Shown here one piece after another: positions 4,861-30,887 of a stretch of DNA of 64,000 nucleotides. The translations under genes were made by a program, and so were the position numbers. This stretch comes from Eukaryota sp. TZLM1-RC. Its lineage: Eukaryota; Protista; Metamonada: BaSk clade. The stretch is from positions 3,328,550 to 3,392,549 of the forward strand of contig JAUPSS010000004.1 in the NCBI GenBank assembly GCA_040285825.1, written 5' to 3'. The number at the start of each line of letters is the position of its first letter. Within the stretch, counting starts at the first letter, position 1. Under the pieces are notes generated by a model. It did not search any database, had not been told where the DNA came from, and saw nothing but the letters and a program-made list of their open reading frames with translations.

Positions 4861-5462
4861 TCTTTCACTGTATGATATCACGATCAAATGATAGTTAAAG
4901 TAGCAACATCACAATACACGTACAGGTACGCAATACATGGAATGACACTTATCTACGGGGTCTCCGGAACGCCTCAGGTCTTTCATTGTAGTAGTGCTCA
5001 CTTATGGCAATCCCCAACTGGTTTCTAGAGGCTGAGATGTCCCTCGACCAGATTGTTTGACATTAAGGGCAAACAAACTTATCATTGTTCACCCTCCCAT
5101 CATCGTGATACAACTTTTGATTGAATATCTTACGGCAATTCGTTTTGGCAGATGTGTAGAATTCATCTCCATTAGGCTTCACATATGTAAAATGTTTCTG
5201 AATCTCCTTCGAAAAGCGCTCCCTTGGGGTTTTCACAGATTGTCTTGATGGCCCGTCACCTCCACTACCTAACCAAATTATGGTTTCTCTTCTATTAGCC
5301 ATTAGTTTAATTTTTTCAATTAATCCAATTATCCTTTTTTGTTCTTTTCTTATGATGCCGTTAGGCAGAAATACCAAAGATGAAAAGAAGAAAAGAGAGT
5401 TAGTTTATCGGTAACAACAACACTACTTCTTCCCATTTTCTTTCAACAGTTTCGTAAATTAT

Positions 5463-7101: not shown

Positions 7102-10100
7102 CTGCAATGAGGGCCAATAATTATTGATGCCGTTAGGCAGAAATACCAAAGAAGAAAAGAAGAAAAGAGAGTTAGCTTATCAGTAACAACAACACTTATA
7201 AAGAAATCAAACTTTTTGCGGCGTAGGGCTCGGCGATCTCCATTCATCAGCAGTTGGTTCAATATAGTCCTCGGACGGAAGTCGGGATTGCTGATTTCTT
7301 CTTGTGTTGGTACCCCTGCGAATGGCGTTGCTACTTCATTAAGATATTTGTATAAATTCCGTACGAAATAGCAATTTGGGGATGCATGGGTCAGGACCGG
7401 GGGGTGAATGATTTTCCTTGCTTTTGGATTCAGAACAAGTCCCGAAAGTTGATGATCAACATTGTTTTTATCAATTTTTGATCCAATTGAATAACCACAA
7501 TCAATTGCACAAAATGAATGTTCAATTGGATCAACTGGAGGAGGCTCGTAGGTGTCATCGGTTCTTCGACGTTGCCTAGGACGAACCTGTTTTTGAAGTT
7601 TGGAGTTTCGCTTTCGACTCTTGGCAGGTATATCGAGTTTCCCACTGGCTATGGTGGTTGCCACTTCTCTGGCTGTCCGGCGATTCTTATTTTTTTGCGG
7701 GAAAGGAAAAAGTGAAGCGGATTGAAACAGCATCTGACGTAATTGTGTAAGTGAGATACTTCTTTTGGGAAAAGGCCAAACGGATTTTTCAGCAGACAGT
7801 GGTTAGCATTAAAAAAGAGAAAATGCTTTTCCAGTTTTTGACTAAAATGGATAAAGCCAGGAGAATAACTGGCGGATGGGCACACGGCATTTCTTCGCAT
7901 GGTGTCAGATGCAATATTTTCCAGAAAGGATAAAGTATTTAGCCCAGCAGTGAATAAGAAGGTGATGTTGTCTGGATTGAGATCAACATTGTCCAGCATC
8001 AACATAGTGTCAAAACGATAAGGGTCGGCAACCTGCTCAGTAAATAGGTCCATTATGTACTCATGGTGATCTTTATCATACCATGTGCGCAAAGAGTCAG
8101 GAATAGTGGCTGCAGTCGTGTTCACCACTATTGAAGCATTTTTCTTTGGATAAGGGCACTCAAAGAAGGTAGCCATTGTCCGGAAGAAGTCCAGCTTCCA
8201 AGAGACAGGGCCATCAGTAAGTATTTGACAAAAGCTGTTCGCCATTCGCAGTGCGCGAAAGCTTCTAATGTCAGAGTGGCACCAGTTGTCGGTTCCCTTC
8301 TAAAAGCCAATAGGAGAAAACGGCCAGCCAGGTCGGAAAGAGTGATCATTGAGTGCGCGGTACACTTCCATGTGATTCTCGAATGGGCATCTCACAGTCG
8401 GATGAGGTACCATTACAATGTCTTGCCATGGATACCAAAACTGTTGTTGATATAACCAGAAAGCCATTTCCGGATATTGCAAGACGAACAGCTGTGCTAA
8501 CCAGGCAGCAAGCACAGTGACAGTTCGAACATAGCGAAACTGTCTTTCCATTAAAACAAGAGCTGCAGTAGAGAAGAACTGAGCAACACTTGCTGGAAGT
8601 GTCGTCTTGCTGTCGTTTTTGGTTGCTCAAAACGGTTAACCTCCCAGGGGAGTACATGCCTTCAACGTGGCAACTCTGGATTTTCCATTGGGAATGTCAG
8701 TCAAGGAAACTTCAGACAGTCAACAATAAAATTTCATTTAATCACAACTTCTTATATCTATAAAAAGTTGAAACATCAGCAAAACGATAATTCAACACTA
8801 TAATACGTGATACTCAAGCTGGCTAAACTATTTTCTTTCTTGAACAGGCTACAGGTGAAGAAGTTGTTTCAGGTGATAACAGCAGCATATTCAATCAAGG
8901 GAACGTTTTGTTTCAATGAGTTTGTATATAGTCTTGTTTCATAACGTTACTTGAGGATCTCATCTCATGAACTGTGTTTTGTGGTAACTCGAAGAATGCT
9001 GCTTTCTATCCATGCTTATTAGTGAAATATTGCTCTTAGCTTTCTGTTCCACACTTTTTTCAAAATTTTAAATAAAATCGGCACTGTGATCCGGCTTTTT
9101 GGCCAACATTAAATCATTTTTCAATCTCTTCTTTTTTGTTTGAATCTTGTAAATGCATTGGGGTCTTTTATATCAACATCACATTTAGCTTTCCCCTCTC
9201 TATTGTTTTGGACACAAACAGTACATCTTCTACTGGTATGACACTAATCTAGCCAGTACACTTTAATACAAATTTTTCTGAGAATTTTTCTCAGTACATC
9301 ACCTCGGATATTGTTGGTTTTTCGTCTCTTCCTTTTCTTTCCAATCGTCAAAGCCAATAACAATATCATTAGATATCTGCATTTAATGGGTGTTTAATCA
9401 GTAAGTTCAGTTGGTCTCACTCCTTTACTTATTTATGGATTTGAATAGAGCTAAACACCTCAAGAGGGGATGTTGGTGAATTGGCAGGCAAAAATAGAAT
9501 ACAAACACAAATTGGAGTCCAATTGATCACGACAAACAATTAGCATAGAAATCAATCCAATACAGCACCACCTTAATTATTCTATATCACGAATCAAGTA
9601 CTTCAGAATTTATAACGAACTATTCTTATATTCCAATTGGCCATTTATGTTGAAGAAAACCATAACTTTTAAACTTTCTCTTCTTAACTTTTACTTTAAC
9701 TCGCTTTAAATTAGGTTCTGTATTGTTCTAAATTGATAAAGTATCTTAACAAAATGGTGTTAGAGTAAAAGTTTTCATTTTGGCAAAAAGGAAAATTTTT
9801 ACAATTACAATTACAGTTACAATTCATCAAATGTGATAGTGGTGACACACCATGATTGCACTGGGGTATCACTGAAGTCATTGTGGATTGGGCTTCGTGT
9901 GATGTTGCAAATGACACTTTGATTCTGTGAAAAAATTAGAACCTGTAGAATCGCTTGGATTCGAAGCAAAAAAAGACCCAAAAAATAATATTTCAATATT
10001 CATGAAGCTAATACGGTTTCAGATGAACAGCTTGCCATTGATACTTTTCTTTTGTTTGAAGAATGGAAGACTTTTAGTTGAAGTGGAGGATATTTATTGA

Positions 10101-14213: not shown

Positions 14214-17200
14214 CTAACGACGTCGCTTATGGGGTTTTGATCCACCGCCAACACGACGTGTGGAATCGTTCAAAAGACTATCAATGGATCTACAGACAGA
14301 GTTATTATTAGCATATTTGATCAATTCAGACCAAATGGACTCAGATTCCGATAATGCAGCAGTATTACCAACAACAAAGGAGAAATGTTTTGCTCTAGTT
14401 AAAATAACATTGACTCTTCGAACATCCTTCAAGAATCCAATATTCGTGGAACTTCTAACAGGTGATATGATGACAATATCGCTTTCAGTACCTTGAGCCC
14501 CGTCCCCAGTTACGACGTTCACACTGAATATGGATGACCTAAACTGCCGAGCCTTGGTATCAAGAAGCCGTTTTTGTCCCCTATATAAAGCCACAATTAA
14601 AACCGACATTTTAAATTCTTTAACATTGAAATCATTCAGCTTTTTAGTAAAATCATCATCCATTTTGCGAAGTAAATTGAAAATCTGCTCTGCTTCATTA
14701 GGATTACTAAAGGAATGTCCTCTTCCCAATGTCTCGCGCCCATTATTGGCAAGACACATAAATGGTCGATACTTTGGAAGTGAAGCAAAAATACGTTTCT
14801 TTTCAGGGTCTAGCTCATAGGCATGCTGAAGAGAACCATTGTAGAATTGAGTGTTGGGAAAGGAGATAATATCAGGATGGCAACGATATTGGGTAATCAG
14901 TTGTGTAAAACGTCCAGCATCTTGGTGAAGGGGAAGAATTCTTTCAAACATTGATTGTTCAAGAGCTTGAGCCTTGGAAATGACTGTAGCTGGAAGCTGG
15001 AGATGATCACCACAAAGCACAATACGAGACTTCTGCTTCTTTAGTAGCTTAAACGGCACCAAAGCAGCAATTTCAGTTGCCTGGGTTACCTCATCAATGA
15101 GCAATACATCAAAATGGTTTTCCAGAGTGTTGAAGACATCTCGTCCAGCACTCCCAAGGGTTGAGAAAACAAGCTTAAACTGCTTAAGAGACACACTTTT
15201 TGAATCAGTCGAGGTTGTAGAATCCAATATTGTATCAAGAGAATAATCGCGAAGATCAGCAGCAAGTTCTTGGGCGCTCACTCTGCACATAACACGGCTC
15301 AGAACTTCATGTTGTCCACATCTACGGAGAATTTCATCATTGGAGTGATTTGAGGGTGTGCACACCAGTACTTTATGCTGACCACGTATCAATAAACGGA
15401 TTAGTTCAACCAACGTTCGAGTTTTACCTTGTGTTAAACGAATGAAGCAACATACCTGTTCCCGGAGGTCCTTGAATTAGGTAAAATCCATCTTGTAGGG
15501 TGCAGACGTTTTTCAAACATCTCTGTTGAGTTTCATTTAGCGATAATGGTATATTTGGTATTAAAGTATCGAACGGAACAAAACGGCTAGGTATGCCTTG
15601 AATGAGTGACTTTTTAATAGCATCAGGCATCTCCAGCTTACGTAACGCCTCCCACTCACGCTGATTCGTTACAACACTACATAGCTTAAGTGCTCCACGC
15701 TTCCCAAAGTGAGCAAATTTTGATTTTGCTTCTCGCCGGAACATCAAACTGTACTTTCCACGAGCAACGTTCTCCACCACAGCCAACTCACAATCTCCTG
15801 GTTGGCAATAACTAGGGTCCTCCAAGAATTGCTGTAACACATTAATGTCCCCAATCATTAATAAATCATGTTTAGAAAGCTGCTGTGAATTATCCTCAGA
15901 ACCCAAAAACTGCTTCTCAGTGCCCTCAAGAGTGGAATTTAGAGCTGTTTCAGCCTCTATTGTGAAATGGTAAGACTTTTGTTTAATATTTGCAGTAGGA
16001 ATGTACAGCAAAATTCTATCAGAAATACCATCTTCTATATTAGACTGTATTTGAGTAAAGAGTTCCACTTCAATCAAAGGAGTGAAAAACTCTTGGTACT
16101 TCTGCAAGGATTCAAAAGAAGCAGCAGCAGGCTTCTTTTCATACTTCCACTTTGATTGAACTACATGAGCAGGTTGAGAGAAATCACTGGGTGGTAACGA
16201 AAACAACTTTTGGAATAATTGAAAGGGACTGGGGATTGAATGAGGTTTGATAGAAGGTCTAGCCTTAGTGAGACTAGGTAAAGTCTGGGGTCCTTTCAAC
16301 AAAGTGCGTGGTTCCTTTTGTGAAACAGAACTACTGGATGTGACCATTGAATGTCCTTTGATGGCGTTGATAGCTCGTGAGGTAAGATCAGGACTGGTGA
16401 TCTCTTTAATTGAACCACTTGTTTGAAACTCGGAGATATTATCCAAAACTCGCATGGTATTGTGAGCAATATGAATCCTGGCATTGTGACGAGCTGCATT
16501 AATCATTTGAAAAAACTTATCAAGATTTAAATCTTTCAAAGAAGGCAACATTTTTGGAATGAGTGTAACTAAGGGTTCACCAATCGAATTAGAAAATTGT
16601 GAGTTGCAGAACGCAGCAGACCCTAAATGAGTAAGAATGTTTCTTATAATTAATGAGAGGTGAGGATGGGCTGACTGCATATGTGTGATTTGGTCCACAA
16701 ATCTTCTTAAGAACTTGATGATTGAGAGATATGATGTAGGTGTTTTAAAAACATTACCACATAGAACGACATCAATAAAGCTGAGGGCTTTGATGATACA
16801 AATTTCAGAATTCCAAAACAATTTTGAACGACCAAAAAACTCATCAGATGTCCCACTTTCGCTTGATAGATCTATAAAAGACGACTCAGTAGGAAGACTT
16901 GCCTCCTCCAAGGAGGCTTCTTCTATGAGATTTAAAATAACAGAAAAAGACATTAAAACATTTTGAAGATCAATTACTTCAAGACTATGGTAATACGACA
17001 AGGCGGTGATGAGGTTAACAAAAATGGACGCAATTGGATTATCAGGAAGAGTAGCTGAGATCCGATTGAAAACTCCAAAAAGAGATTCACTGACATTTAA
17101 GCGCTCAAGGGTGGGAGTGAAAACACGATGAAACACCTTTGTGATGCTGTCAAGGTCTAAAACATTGGCCAAAGTGATCCAATAACAGCAGAATGATGAT

Positions 17201-18327: not shown

Positions 18328-18394
18328 GGTGAACAAGGCCTACTGAGAATGTTGTTGGGCCTTAAATAATGAATGGTTCAAAGGTTTTGTGATG

Positions 18395-18640
18395 ATCAAT
18401 ACTGTGAATTTCACTTATCATGCATTCCCCTGTGAAATTCACTCCTGTTTTCAACTCCCTCAGTGTCTACTCACAGGCTGTAAGAGACATGTAGCATCAT
18501 TTGACAAAGACAATCATGATCTTCATCAATGGGCTACCTCACTTAAATACACCTACTGCTTTCACAGAACAAAGCCTCGCGACTTGATGTATCTAAGTGG
18601 ATCTACCAAATGCTACTAGGGCATTTGTAGATCGGTCTCA
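18395..18640 (-). ncRNA. Candidate Fanzor omega-RNA scaffold
   Basis: Five closely spaced hairpins (18600-18633, 18540-18599, 18491-18537, 18464-18489, 18404-18442) directly downstream of Fanzor B. The non-Watson-Crick pairs in the stems are G.U only on the minus strand. Confidence 0.65.
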
Positions 18641-18674
18641 AAAGTTTTTGTTTCTGTATGCTCAGGTTCCCCAT

Positions 18675-20624
18675 TCATCTTCTCAACAGAGCATCTGGGC
18701 AAATGTATCTTTCCGGTCACAATTCCACTTTCTTCTTAATTTGAATATTTTTTGCAGCGGAAATATCTCTGTCATATACTATTTGACACTCAGTACAAAT
18801 ACGCATCTGCCATGAGCCTGCTTGAATATTCTCGGCCATGCAACAACTTGACATTTTGCTTGTATTAAATTCACTGGTTGACAAGTGCTTCACGTCCTTT
18901 TGATAACACAACCATTTTCAGAAAGCCCTTGCTGATCCATATCGATTGACTTTTCGGCAATGAGAAGGGAAATTAGCAGAACCCACAGCAAGATAGAGTT
19001 TTTCAGGATGTCCAGCCAGCCTTTGAAATTTGTTGAGACTCTCTCTGAACCGTCTCTCTTTTCGTCTGCGGTTATCAAATTTAATTATTTTCCATTTCTG
19101 GCGATTACTTTCCAAATACACTTTCCTCCTAACCAAATTCCAATGGTTCAAATATTGGTTGAAATTTTGAACGGAATATTGGTTGGGAGAGTGTTTACTG
19201 GGTGAAGGTTTTGTCATGTATCTTCTGCCAGTTGGACAAGGGATAACTCCACATTGATTATCATTTAAGAAGTAACCACATAATCTTGATTGGCCAAGAT
19301 CAACGCCGATAAGGGGGCTTTCAGGTAAAATTTCGACTGGATGTCTACGTCTTCGACGGGGCATTTTTTTAGTACCCTTCAACTGTGTTTCTCTGGTTTT
19401 GTTGGCATTAGGGTCACTTTTCATTTCATTTTTTGATCTTCTTTTCTTTTTCGGTGGTTCATCCAGCTCATCTGTGTTTTCTGAGTCATTTTTACCTTCC
19501 AAGGTCAAAAGCAGTTCATTACCATTAGTTTTCAATAAAATTTTGTTAAATCTATTTTTCAAACTTTTTCTGTTGATATTGAATTTTTGGTAAGGACATT
19601 GTTTGAATATTCGTTTCAGACATGTATTTTTGATAAACTTTGTTTTGGAAGATGATCCTTCAATAATTGGAAATTTTTTCACAGAGTGAAAAATTTGTGA
19701 AGGTACCTCAATAAATTTAGAACCTTTATGAGAAGCTAAAGGTATTATTCTAAATTTCTTCCAGCAATGCATATGAGAAAAGAAAGTGAGTAAGTATTGT
19801 GAAATTTTAAAATTGAAGAGAAAAAGCTCACCAATTTTCTTTGATGAAAAAGTGATTTTATCATGTGAGGACAGTAGCGAGGCAGTGGTAGGAAATTTTT
19901 GGAGGAGATTCAAGATAAACCTACATGCATTCAATAAAAAAGTCTTTCTCTTGAATTATTCAAATTGAAATTGATGAGGTATTCAAGAACAGAATCAACT
20001 ACTACTTCCTCGGGTTGGGCTAGTGGTTCATCTGGCAAAAGTGAAAGAATATTATTTGCAAAGACATTTGTTTTATTCAGGGCTCTACAATGAGCACGAA
20101 TAAAGTTTTTTGTCCAGGATTGACAAATTTTGGGTAAACTTGTCTTCACGTTGGAGGCCAATTGACGAGCCTGACAAGCAAGGTAAGGAGAAAGCCCTTT
20201 TCTATTGATAAAATTACAGTTCTGGGACTGCAGCCAATCATTGAGGAAAAGATTGAATGAATTTCTGAGGCACTAAAGAATTTTCCCACACAGAAACAAG
20301 AGACCTGTCTTGTGGGCATTCAGGAAGAAATCCATTGTAAAAGATATGGAGTAATTGGCGTTGGCCTTTAGATGTGGAAGGCTTAGGAAAAGAACCAGTG
20401 GTGATGACGGTCATAAACAGAAACCATACATCCTGTTCCACTAAAGCTCTAGATGCCAACGGAAAATTTAGAAGAAAAGATTGAAGTAATAAAGAAGCTT
20501 CATGACAAATCTCGGTGACCACAGGAAGGTCAGTCCGAATTTGTTGCACCGCTGCAGGGGTCAGCAGCGAGTTAAGTGCACATGACCGAGTGAATACACG
20601 TGCCACAGAGTGGGTGTCTGACAT
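18675..20624 (-). pseudogene. Fanzor1-like nuclease locus B, near full length (~640 codons), with 2 frameshifts and 2 in-frame TGA
   Basis: N-terminal VTEICHEASLLLQSFLL and RKGLSPYLACQARQLASNV; RuvC-I LIGVDLG; LAVGSANF; RuvC-II SEFNTSK; CC...CTEC zinc ligands; RuvC-III YDRDISAAKNI; terminal L*PERY. Confidence 0.88.
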
Positions 20625-20994
20625 GTAGTGAGAATAAAGAGCTCATCTATCAAATTTTACACTTGTCACCCCATTTTCGACTTCTGGTTGCCTGTTCTGG
20701 GAGGTTTTTAACCCTCAACTTGGTTTTGGGAGGTTTTCACTATTCCCACACTTTCCCCTCACTTCATAAACTAGGTTCATAAATTAGGTATCCTTTGTAA
20801 AAGTTGCACTGGAGTAGTCAATGACATCCATATACGACCACCTACTACCATGCTTTCTATCTGAGTTCTCTGCTTGTTACATGAACTGCTTTTATCACAA
20901 GCCTCCCCTTCTTGCTCAATTTACAGACCACCGATCTTCGTTTATCAATATTACACTGAAGCACCTCCTCACCTCAGTAATCCGCTCTCTTGAT

Positions 20995-21250
20995 CTGGAA
21001 ATTGTCTTGCCAAGATTAATTGTTGGGTTTCAGGGTTCTTCAACTTGATTGATGTAATGCACCATGTCATTAGGACAATTTCGTGTGCTGGAATGCAGGA
21101 AACGCATATTGTGGTTTTGCAATAATTGAAACGCTACTGTGATAAATGGACCACCACACGTACAAGCATGCTAGCAAGCATTTGAGTCATTATTTTGGGT
21201 ATTATATGTGAAACAAAAAAACAACTAAACCTAAATATATTCAAAAGTTG
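20995..21250 (-). promoter_or_regulatory. Orphan copy of the H3-to-H4 intergenic spacer / H4 upstream region, with no H4 gene following
   Basis: Colinear with 23943-24215 and 37165-37220, e.g. AAGTTGAAGAACCCTGAAACCCAACA...ATTAATCTTGGCAAGACAATTTCCAG. Confidence 0.75.
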
Positions 21251-21266
21251 AGTATTGAAGAACACT
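21251..21266 (-). promoter_or_regulatory. Histone 3' stem-loop (H3): AGTGTT-CTTC-AATACT
   Basis: 6-bp stem, 4-nt loop, 17 nt after the stop; motif shared by all 9 histone genes. Confidence 0.75.
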
Positions 21267-21283
21267 ACAACTATAAAGCACAA

Positions 21284-21691
21284 TTAAAAATCAGAACGAA
21301 TTCTCTTAGCCAAGGCCATATCCTTGGGCATAATGGTAACACGTTTAGCATGGATAGCACAGAGATTTGTGTCTTCAAACAAACCAACAAGGTAAGCTTC
21401 AGCAGCTTCTTGAAGTGCAGAGATACCAGAGGCTTGGAATCTCAACTCACCCTTAAATTCTTGGGCAATTTCTCTAACCAAACGTTGGAAGGGTAGCTTG
21501 CGGATCAAGAGTTCAGTAGACTTTTGGTACTTTCTGATTTCACGGAGAGCAACAGTACCAGGACGATAACGATGGGGTTTCTTGATACCACCAGTAGCGG
21601 GTGCAGCTTTGCGAGCAGCCTTGGTAGCCAAATGCTTTCTTGGAGTCTTGGTGGAGGTAGTCTTGCGAGAGGTTTGCTTAGTACGTGCCAT
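21284..21691 (-). CDS. H3: Histone H3
   Basis: ARTKQT...[40 protein letters not shown]. Confidence 0.98.
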
Positions 21692-24620: not shown

Positions 24621-25477
24621 ATTAAATCCTATTTTTTTGTATCTTAACAATTTTTTAGTTATAAATGTCATTTATTTGGTGAATGACTATCTATTGATCC
24701 AACATTGAAAAACATGGTTGACATGGTTGGTGGTTACTACCCTTAAGACCTCAGTAATACGGTGGTCATATTACCCAAGTCGAGTTACTTGACTGGGAAA
24801 TACCACAGTCGATTTGACTTCGATTTAATTCAAGTCATTTGACAACACTACTAATGCTTTCAAATTTCTTGGTTCCTGGTTAAAAAATGTGCTTCAAATT
24901 CTGAATGAATTACAAGGTATCTTGGAGAAAATGAAAATTGAACTTGTTTAATTTCTTCTTCGGATTTACAATAATATATTAAATTTTTAATGGTTAAAAT
25001 ATTCTATACTGGGGGAATAACCCCGATTTTGAGCTCTTGTGCTCCTCCTATAAGATTGGATTGTTGTCGATCCTTGAATTCTTTGCTGATTTGTTGGAAC
25101 GTTGAAAACCCATTTATTTTCTGCAGCAATCGATAAGGAAATTCAGGACCGATCTCTTTTGAATTGGCAATTTTATTGTAAACAATTTCAACAAAAATTG
25201 TCAAAGATTTTTGGAAGCTTGGATTTTGATGTTAGATTTGGCTTGGCCAAGAAATAGAATCCCGCTTTTGCAAATCTTTTACAAGATATGTGTGATAGTA
25301 CTTCTTCTGCCTTAGTAACAACAATTCGTCAAGTTTATGGTACTCGCTTAACTGATTCTGCCTGGACTTTGGATATGAGATTTCGTTCCTTTATCTGGCC
25401 TGATAATTTATTTCGTAATTTAATTTGTATATGTTCTCGAAAAAATACAATTACTCCTTTGTTAAGTAAAATTGATA

Positions 25478-25724
25478 TTTATTGAACATGCACACTTAAT
25501 TAAATTAATTCATAACTAATAAGACGACTATCATTGAACCAAGATTTCCTCTACAAAATCTTGATCTGCTTGCTGTCTAGCTAAAGCTTCTCTTATTCGA
25601 TTGAAAAACCGAGGTAATCTATTAATAATGATAAATTGAATCCAAGAACGCCATAAAAAAATGTCAAATCTTTTCATTGTTTTTTCTTGAACCATTTTCT
25701 GGAAATCATTCAAAAAAATTTCTG
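25478..25724 (-). mobile_element. 3' end fragment of the CRE-like element (family of 2487-4860)
   Basis: Near-identical to 2487-2730, including REALARQQADQDFVE.ILVQ* and the 3' UTR. Confidence 0.85.
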
Positions 25725-25764
25725 CTTTTGTTAAGTTGTAAACATTTAATTATTTTTAGAAGCA

Positions 25765-26360
25765 AGGGTCACGATTCTGTCAGAGATCAATTATATTGTA
25801 TGTGTAAGTCTAATAGAATTGAACCATTTTTGGAACCTCTATTGTCAAGTCTGTTTGATACTGAAGATGATGTTCACAGGAACAATAAAGGTGATGTCAT
25901 ATTACCTGGATTGGATGGAACCTTCATTTTACTGGATGTAATGTCTTCATCCTTTTAATGCCTCAAATGAAAGGCTTGCTAATTCTGAATTTCATAATCC
26001 TCTTTCAATTGCTGAAAATTTCAAAATCAAAAAATACAATGAACCTTTATCCAACTTGTCCAGACAACAGCATGCAAAATGCAATTTGTATCCATTTGTA
26101 TTTTCTATTTTTGGTTCACTTGCTCCCACAGCTGAACGTTGTTTGACAGATTTTGAAATGATTGTGAAGAGAAGGAGTAACAGAAATCGCAACAGATTGT
26201 TTTGGCAAAATCAAACTGTGTTTTCTATTTTTAAAAAGATGTTGAAGATCGTTTCTGATACTTTGCTTTCTCTTGGATCTCACTATGAGAGAGTTGCATC
26301 TAGTTGTGTTGTTTGGGAGAGATGGATTATTTGGGTGTTGATTAATAAGTTTTTTAATAA
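25765..26360 (+). mobile_element. RLE endonuclease 3' fragment of a second CRE-like family
   Basis: HDSVRDQLYCMCK...KGDVILPGLDGTFILLDVMS...KIKKY...LYPFVFSIFGSL; related to 30390-30887. Confidence 0.72.
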
Positions 26361-30309: not shown

Positions 30310-30887
30310 ACTTATCGTTCTTTTACACGATGCTGTCACAGATACTCTTTTCAATATGGCGTTGAGAAGGTATGTAGAAATGAGATTTTCATAAGAATAA
30401 CAGAGGTGATGTCATCTCACCTCGATTAGATGGAACCTTCATTTTATTGCATGTAATGTCGGTTGATGCTTGTAATGTCTCAAGTGAAAGGCTTGCTAAT
30501 TCTGAAAATCATAATCCTCTTTCAAATGCTGAAAATTTCAAAATCAAAAAATACAATGAACCTTTGTCCAAATTGTCCAGCCAACAGCATGCAAAATACA
30601 ATTTGTACCCATTTGTAGTTTCTCTATTTGGTTCACTTGCTCCAACGGCTATACGTTTTTTGGCAGATTTTGAAATGATTGTAAAGAGAAGAACTAACAG
30701 AAATTTCAACAGATTGTTTTGGCAAAATAGAATTGTGTATTCTATTTTTAAGGGGATGTTGAAGATGGTTTCTGATGTTCTACTTTCTCTTGAATCTCAC
30801 TATGAGAGAGTTGCATATAGTTGTTTTGTTTTGCGAGAGATGGATTATTTAGATGTTTTTTATAAGTTTTTTAATAAATATTATTGA
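30310..30887 (+). mobile_element. CRE-like RLE 3' fragment (family 1 start joined to family 2)
   Basis: cacgatgctgtc..gatact..ttcaatatggc (family 1), then NRGDVI...KIKKYNEPL...LYPFVVSLFGSLAP (family 2). Confidence 0.7.

Follow-up and report, generated by a model that had tools for sequence, protein, structure and literature searches.

The element and its surroundings

The window considered here is a stretch of 64,000 nucleotides (nt) of contig JAUPSS010000004.1, from the assembly GCA_040285825.1 of the skoliomonad Skoliomonas litria TZLM1-RC. It is recognisably eukaryotic, since it contains genes for core histones and, in a helicase-like gene, an intron of 28 nt. Between the histone H3 gene and this helicase-like gene, the minus-strand segment 20991-18400 is, as judged by homology, one copy of a multi-copy element of the Fanzor/TnpB type. 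This copy carries a broken nuclease gene followed by a structured region (18639-18400) which is very probably the scaffold of a guide RNA (Table 1). By the same kind of sequence comparison, the Fanzor family to which it belongs is new and lineage-restricted to skoliomonads, the element itself being of a known kind.

The copies compared were, in S. litria, the window copy, L001, L002, L004a, L004b, L005, L006, L007 and L011, and, in the related genome GEM-RC1, L003 and L012. Copies are found on at least six contigs of the S. litria assembly with unrelated flanks, as is usual for a multi-copy nuclear mobile element, and 82 gene models fall in the 90% cluster of the family. The flanks differ among the ten copies examined, most of which have frameshifts or deletions. 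No transposase open reading frame (ORF) is present in any copy examined, and no terminal inverted repeat was found between 20991 and 18400 in the window copy.

Only L001, among the other copies, has the same left end (20991). The window copy and L001 have 210 nt in common upstream of the shared body (20991-20782), and both diverge at the same base, which is taken as the left end. The elements of GEM-RC1 (L003:3882-7235 and L012:1797-5236) are longer, about 3.35 kilobases (kb), with about 1.1 kb upstream of the ORF.

Table 1. Features of the window copy and its flanks, with one associated ORF from other loci (window numbering unless a locus is named).
Feature	Position	Strand	Basis
Whole element copy (sub-family common to the window and L001)	18400..20991	-	L001 homology exactly 20991-18400, both flanks unrelated
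5′ module, sub-family-specific	20782..20991	-	Matched by L001 alone
Common 5′ leader upstream of start codon	20625..20781	-	Identity 89-100% in six S. litria copies, 75% in L007
Fanzor pseudogene	18675..20624	-	ATG 20624-20622, native stop 18677-18675; colinear with intact 651-aa P0074
Frameshift, 2 nt missing relative to intact paralog	20267..20269 (near 20268)	-	MAFFT alignment to L011
Frameshift, 1 nt missing in T run	19942..19944 (near 19943)	-	Alignment to L011; assembly error possible
Nonsense codon, AGA>TGA (Arg in paralogs)	18918..18920	-	Comparison with L011 and paralogs
Nonsense codon, TGG>TGA (Trp in paralogs)	18717..18719	-	Comparison with L011 and paralogs
RuvC-I motif GVDLG, predicted catalytic Asp	19293..19307	-	Asp is D444 of P0074, invariant in 20 relatives
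LAVGSANF, Gly at expected site of canonical Glu	18992-18969	-	G550 nearly invariant
SEFNTSK, Glu taken as relocated RuvC-II	18855..18875	-	E587 nearly invariant; by motif position
Zinc-finger Cys pairs, upstream of RuvC-III	18851-18840, 18797-18786	-	Four Cys conserved in 20 relatives
RuvC-III motif YDRDISAAKN	18747..18776	-	D622 nearly invariant in 20 relatives
Candidate omega-RNA scaffold, ~240 nt	18400..18639	-	RNAalifold consensus, pair counts; same plan in GEM-RC1 copy
P0 closing helix	18639-18635 with 18488-18484	-	Consensus structure
H2 outer stem	18599-18586 with 18553-18540	-	Consensus structure
H3	18537-18517 with 18512-18491	-	Consensus structure
H5	18442-18432 with 18414-18404	-	Consensus structure
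Left flank, histone H3-to-H4 spacer	20992..21283	-	Homology to two other histone clusters stops at element left end
Right flank, 72 nt, to ATG 18327-18325 of same-strand helicase-like host gene	18328..18399	-	Gene calls, copy alignment
MJ1316-domain small ORF	L002:4371-4793; L004:8362-8940; L011:2552-2850 (truncated)	-	E 1.5e-11

A dead nuclease gene with intact paralogs

The ORF pieces of the window gene were searched separately and never joined, intact paralogs from the databases serving as the full-length reference. One of them, P0074 (651 residues, aa), is encoded by an intact intron-less ORF at L011:3001-4956 in S. litria. Two others, P0087 (648 aa) and P0091 (646 aa), are likewise encoded by intact intron-less ORFs in GEM-RC1; loci with an intact ORF include L011 and L012. 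The window copy is 97.9% identical to L011 over 2377 nt and, as read from this alignment, its nuclease gene is dead, with two frameshifts and two nonsense codons in addition to an in-frame deletion of 3 nt near 19491.

The first-pass annotation of this DNA had joined several ORF pieces into one disrupted protein and called for an intact paralog. The pieces do lie where it had placed them, colinear with P0074, and the lesions could be mapped against L011. Its stop codon, on the other hand, has to be moved: the TGA at 18719-18717 is one of the nonsense codons and the native stop, at 18677-18675, lies 14 codons farther. The breaks might also have been due to short introns or to a non-standard genetic code. 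Both were rejected, since the two TGA positions correspond to Arg and Trp codons in the paralogs, whose ORFs run uninterrupted across both frameshift sites.

Protein motifs and relatives

The C-terminus of the protein is the part recognised by sequence searches. The last piece (18911-18720) matches Pfam PF07282, the Cas12f1/TnpB TNB domain, with an E-value of 6.5e-8 (33.1 bits for a cut-off of 26.3), and the same profile gives 27.6-31.1 bits with P0074, P0087 and P0041, a longer homologue from a third skoliomonad genome, TZLM3-RCL. This C-terminal piece also matches the NCBIfam model guided_TnpB (E 6.5e-7) and a Cas12m structure. With a profile of the whole family, matches to Cas12m, TranC and TnpB structures were obtained, and hhalign against two Bacillota TnpBs gave a probability of 93% (E 2.5e-7) over the last 69 columns. 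The search against TnpB and Fanzor profiles that had been proposed at first pass is thus positive, for the last piece with PF07282 and for the C-terminus with hhalign.

Farther upstream, a search of the Protein Data Bank (PDB) with the 338-aa central piece gave no match. A HMMER search with this piece against 1.8 billion representatives returned 16 hits, the significant ones being confined to three skoliomonad genomes (labelled Eukaryota sp. TZLM1-RC, GEM-RC1 and TZLM3-RCL). The nearest neighbours according to a protein language model (0.97-0.98) come from giant viruses and green algae and carry PF07282.

The three RuvC motifs and the Cys ligands picked out by eye at first pass are all located in the window copy, and the Asp, Glu, Asp and Cys residues are conserved in 20 relatives. 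The acidic triad D444/E587/D622 (P0074 numbering) is complete in the window copy. In Fanzors, the RuvC-II glutamate is relocated: the canonical site is occupied by Gly or Pro, and the conserved Glu is found some 45 aa farther along the chain (PMC10530073). The spacing between G550, which lies in a beta-strand motif, and E587 is 37 aa in the 20 relatives, G550 being matched to the canonical site by motif position, in a region which no TnpB alignment covers. The pattern of G550 and E587 would, on this matching, be compatible with the relocated glutamate of Fanzors. The size of the protein and its large N-terminal half agree only loosely with Fanzor1. Two basic runs, at 19457-19431 and 19361-19341, were noted when considering a nuclear localisation signal of the Fanzor type.

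A conserved, strand-specific fold at the 3′ end

Downstream of the nuclease gene, the sense strand has a consensus structure in which a closing helix, P0, surrounds a three-way junction made of H1, a branched H2 and H3, followed by a short H4 and by a terminal hairpin of 11 bp, H5. The right end of the element lies 4 nt (AGUA) past this terminal hairpin. In the window copy, the predicted energy of the sense fold is -103.6 kcal/mol (z -3.86, with 0 of 100 shuffles as good), to be compared with -83.4 kcal/mol (z -1.99) for the antisense strand. The GEM-RC1 copy, folded alone, adopts the same plan, at -84.7 kcal/mol (z -5.6) versus -61.2 for its antisense. All 79 consensus pairs form in the window copy, with 7 G.U and no A.C pairs; the GEM-RC1 copy has 12 G.U pairs and a single A.C.

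These figures uphold two claims of the first-pass annotation, namely that the fold is strand-specific and that its non-Watson-Crick pairs are G.U on the coding strand. The description of five stems stands in part. The three stems that it had spelled out all belong to the consensus structure (H2 outer stem, H3 and H5). The fourth is not kept in GEM-RC1, where one of its arms is lost by a 20-nt deletion, and only a shorter CCUGU/ACAGG helix is common to both species.

The structure is also conserved more strictly than its surroundings. Over seven copies, 97.2% of the cells are paired, versus 36-41% when the partners are slid, and five pairs are changed on both sides, a level which was reached in 1 of 500 shuffles. 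Between the window and GEM-RC1 copies, 14 of the 16 changed pairs are still paired, five through double changes and nine through single changes by way of G.U. Differences affect 22 of the 151 paired columns (15%) and 25 of the 64 unpaired ones (39%), and the identity between the two species is 84.5% in the scaffold versus 68-74% in the ORF. In two old copies, about 60 nt are inserted just 5′ of the closing helix, an indication that the insertion site marks the 5′ boundary of the scaffold.

The collection of paralogs, advised at first pass as a means to define ends and conserved hairpins, has thus yielded a shared right end, an RNAalifold consensus and double changes in GEM-RC1. These sequence comparisons support the idea that the structured 3′ region behaves as an omega-RNA scaffold, since it is sense-specific, ends at the right end of the element and shows compensated changes in a second species.

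Right end, putative guide and target-adjacent motif

The right end falls exactly at window position 18400 in both GEM-RC1 copies and in six of those from S. litria. It closes a motif that ends in CACAGTA, and the flanks beyond it are unrelated. The exceptions are L005, truncated in the last hairpin, L006, whose end is mutated, L007, which is cut earlier, and L011, in which the final 5 nt are missing. Should the RNA continue past the right end, the first 15-20 nt of the flank would, by analogy with characterised Fanzors, be the guide (PMC10432273). With the right end at 18400, this guide would therefore start at 18399 (TTGATC...), in place of the start CATCAC at 18393 initially predicted.

The target-adjacent motif (TAM) had been placed in TTCCAG. 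This assignment falls, the left end at 20991 being common to L001 alone, from which no TAM is readable. More generally, neither a TAM nor a target-site duplication could be deduced as a motif from the independent left ends, because these are too few: two for this sub-family and two for GEM-RC1.

Proposed explanation and its rivals

The best explanation, to which a probability of about 0.75 can be given, is that the window holds a copy, now decayed, of a Fanzor element that lacks a transposase and has an omega-RNA scaffold on its sense strand and a guide derived from the flank. In the intact copies, a single intron-less ORF would encode an RNA-guided RuvC nuclease of 651 aa. Starting about 35 nt beyond the stop codon, some 240 nt reaching to the right end would be copied into a sense-strand RNA, which would fold into the three-way junction and the two hairpins that make up the scaffold. 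This transcript would then cross the right end and finish with 15-20 nt taken from the flanking DNA, which would act as guide. The window copy would have kept its scaffold intact, with 79 of 79 pairs, beside a dead nuclease gene.

The lesions and the ends of the element were directly observed, as were the homology and the conservation and covariation of the structure. By analogy with known systems, we infer that the scaffold RNA is transcribed, bound by the nuclease and functional as a guide.

Several points weigh against this explanation. The compensatory changes all come from one other lineage, GEM-RC1, and represent few independent events, which is why the covariation test is supportive and not conclusive. 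In L011, whose ORF is intact, the final 5 nt of the right end are missing and one H3 pair is broken. No recognisable scaffold was seen by eye behind the distant TZLM3-RCL relatives, no covariance model having been built, and no Rfam family matches the scaffold. On the protein side, the sequence homology to TnpB is confined to the last ~70 residues, and the AlphaFold2 models of P0026 (13 sequences) and P0074 (20 sequences), with mean confidence scores (pLDDT) of 36.3 and 41.8, are too poor to confirm the fold.

The hairpins might alternatively be transposition signals at the DNA level, either a subterminal hairpin or a terminal inverted repeat used by a transposase acting in trans, and not an RNA scaffold. 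H5 is a perfect 11-bp palindrome located 4 nt from the end, and the 3′ hairpins of IS200/IS605 elements and Helitrons resemble such an end palindrome. All the H5 pairs are Watson-Crick, so that H5 alone cannot separate RNA from DNA. Besides, the left end of the GEM-RC1 elements (from L003:3882 and L012:1797) repeats, in inverted orientation, the final 10-13 nt of the right end, which lie inside H5. However, an end signal needs far less than the 240 nt over which the structure is conserved. Its sense strand has 7-12 G.U pairs for 0-1 A.C and folds 20-23 kcal/mol better than the other strand in both species, and the window copy is devoid of terminal inverted repeat. Both roles can moreover coexist, as in SpuFz1, in which the omega-RNA spans the 3′ inverted repeat (PMC10432273). 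As a replacement for the RNA scaffold, a DNA signal thus appears unlikely.

Less likely still, the 3′ region would be an mRNA or regulatory element with no guide function, involved in stability or termination as a 3′ untranslated region, or serving as promoter or leader for the downstream host gene. This idea comes from the position of the element, since a same-strand gene starts 8-153 nt past the right end in five of eight S. litria copies (72 nt in the window, 18 nt in L004b, about 40 nt in L006, 8 nt after the truncated end in L005 and 153 nt in L004a). The genome is nevertheless compact, and chance would partly account for such nearness to a gene start. The structure is kept from one species to the other irrespective of the adjoining gene, which is convergent in L002 and L011 of S. 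litria and in L012 of GEM-RC1, not called in L003, and about 630 nt away, as the next same-strand start, in L001. A three-way junction ending at the element border is also what TnpB and Fanzor scaffolds look like.

The least probable view, that the whole family is extinct and that its conservation reflects the recent common descent of dead copies with nothing functional, could draw on the frameshifts or deletions of most examined copies and on the damaged right end of the intact-ORF copy, but it hardly accounts for intact ORFs (651, 648 and 646 aa) in two species diverged by about 30% at the DNA level, nor for between-species substitutions that avoid the stems and are compensated.

Comparison with known RNA-guided nucleases

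The decayed Fanzor element resembles the Spu-1 element of Spizellomyces punctatus, which encodes SpuFz1 (Saito et al. 2023, PMC10432273), in being a single-ORF element of about 2-3 kb, without internal transposase, and present as full, partial and degraded copies. The right-end inverted repeat of GEM-RC1 lies inside the RNA, as in Spu-1. In contrast, the scaffold is about 240 nt long here versus 75 nt in SpuFz1, a terminal inverted repeat was not found in the window copy, and three kinds of 5′ module are joined to the same body. Neither the 338-aa piece, searched against the PDB, nor the family profile gave a match to the SpuFz1 structure.

With ISDra2 TnpB, of the IS200/IS605 group, the family shares a C-terminus made of RuvC and zinc-finger elements, with weak direct matches to the structures 8bf8, 8exa and 8h1j, as well as a scaffold ending at the right end and a guide from the flank, which is here a predicted one. 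Unlike this TnpB of about 400 residues, the skoliomonad protein has 651 aa and a large helical N-terminal half. Its Glu is found, by motif position, in the TSK-proximal motif and not at the canonical RuvC-II site. Its scaffold lies wholly downstream of the ORF without overlapping it, and no TnpA is present.

The Fanzors of giant viruses and algae (ApmFz2, mimivirus L79, PDB 9b0l), with lengths of 625-800 aa, are the nearest language-model neighbours. The direct match to 9b0l is weak (E 0.37) and, whereas these proteins carry PF07282 with or without Pfam DUF8286, the latter is undetected in the skoliomonad family even at an E-value of 10. No paper linking Fanzor to Metamonada or skoliomonads was found among the matches listed.

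A well-delimited Fanzor family is thereby added, with an exact right end, a scaffold model of 240 nt and intact proteins of 646-651 aa in two species. Since the last ~70 residues alone are recognisable by sequence, the family extends the range of sequences known among RNA-guided nucleases. P0074 and P0087, which are intact and have their own 3′ region, make a direct test possible. In terms of genome annotation, the window copy is a pseudogene, and the H4 slot of a histone cluster is occupied by the element.

Modules and fusions

Upstream of the coding region, the other copies have different 5′ modules joined to the common body at 20805-20778. Three such modules have been seen: that of the window and L001, that of L002, L004a and L011, and that of L004b, L005, L006 and L007. 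The second one contains, on the other strand and divergent from the Fanzor gene, the small MJ1316-domain ORF listed in Table 1. MJ1316 domains recognise the cyclic-phosphate ends of RNA. This small protein may derive from a fragment captured from the host, or be a partner that travels with the element.

In TZLM3-RCL, the homologous Fanzor is preceded by, or fused to, a nuclease module of the FEN1/XPG type (XPG_N/XPG_I). The P0041 model, of 1323 aa, combines XPG_N/XPG_I with the Fanzor, its residues 581-1308 being colinear with the S. litria protein. The loci concerned are L008:923-4980, L010:3001-7058 and L009:1185-4149, L008 and L010 being one and the same locus. Gene callers split the fusion into two genes at two TZLM3-RCL loci, with 54 nt between them in L008/L010. 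No paper joining "Fanzor" and "XPG" was found among those searchable.

Another dispersed repeat family, with 82-90% identity, occurs near Fanzor copies (window 25138-26295 and 30384-30812, L011:1-890 and L004:14203-14817). Two other minus-strand segments of the window, 5021-5074 and 7335-7688, show weak protein similarity to Fanzor pieces, of 27-50% over short stretches.

Host genes around the element

The histone cluster of the window consists of H3 (21284-21691) and the H3-H4 spacer (20992-21283) without H4, and the element follows in the same orientation. Homology to the paralogous clusters stops about 66 nt before the position of their H4 ATG, and the H4 promoter may now drive the element. 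The right flank was also considered as a remnant of the H4 leader, in a reconstruction of the empty site. This candidate was rejected as being not above chance, 935-966 of 1000 shuffles scoring as well. Because H4 is missing and the right flank holds no recognisable leader remnant, a simple insertion into the H4 leader is insufficient; as far as the sequence tells, the locus needs a deletion or a recombination between copies besides.

A broader picture is speculative and, on balance, doubtful. Skoliomonad Fanzors would form a transposase-free, RNA-guided and self-spreading lineage with modular 5′ ends, one of them bearing MJ1316. They would land upstream of same-strand genes, the host leader becoming the guide, and would thus target the 5′ ends of genes, with fused or partner nucleases processing the cuts. 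Exact docking of the right end on a start codon was not seen in the S. litria copies of this family.

At the neighbouring genes themselves, three details could be noted. In L005 (6063-6071), the element is cut in the loop of its last hairpin and a gene for a protein of 664 aa starts 8 nt later. In L004 (18025-18044), 18 nt separate the right end from the ATG of a downstream ZNF598-like RING gene. In the helicase-like gene downstream of the window copy, a 28-nt GT-AG intron (15424-15451, minus strand) splits the P-loop (GPPGTG|KT).

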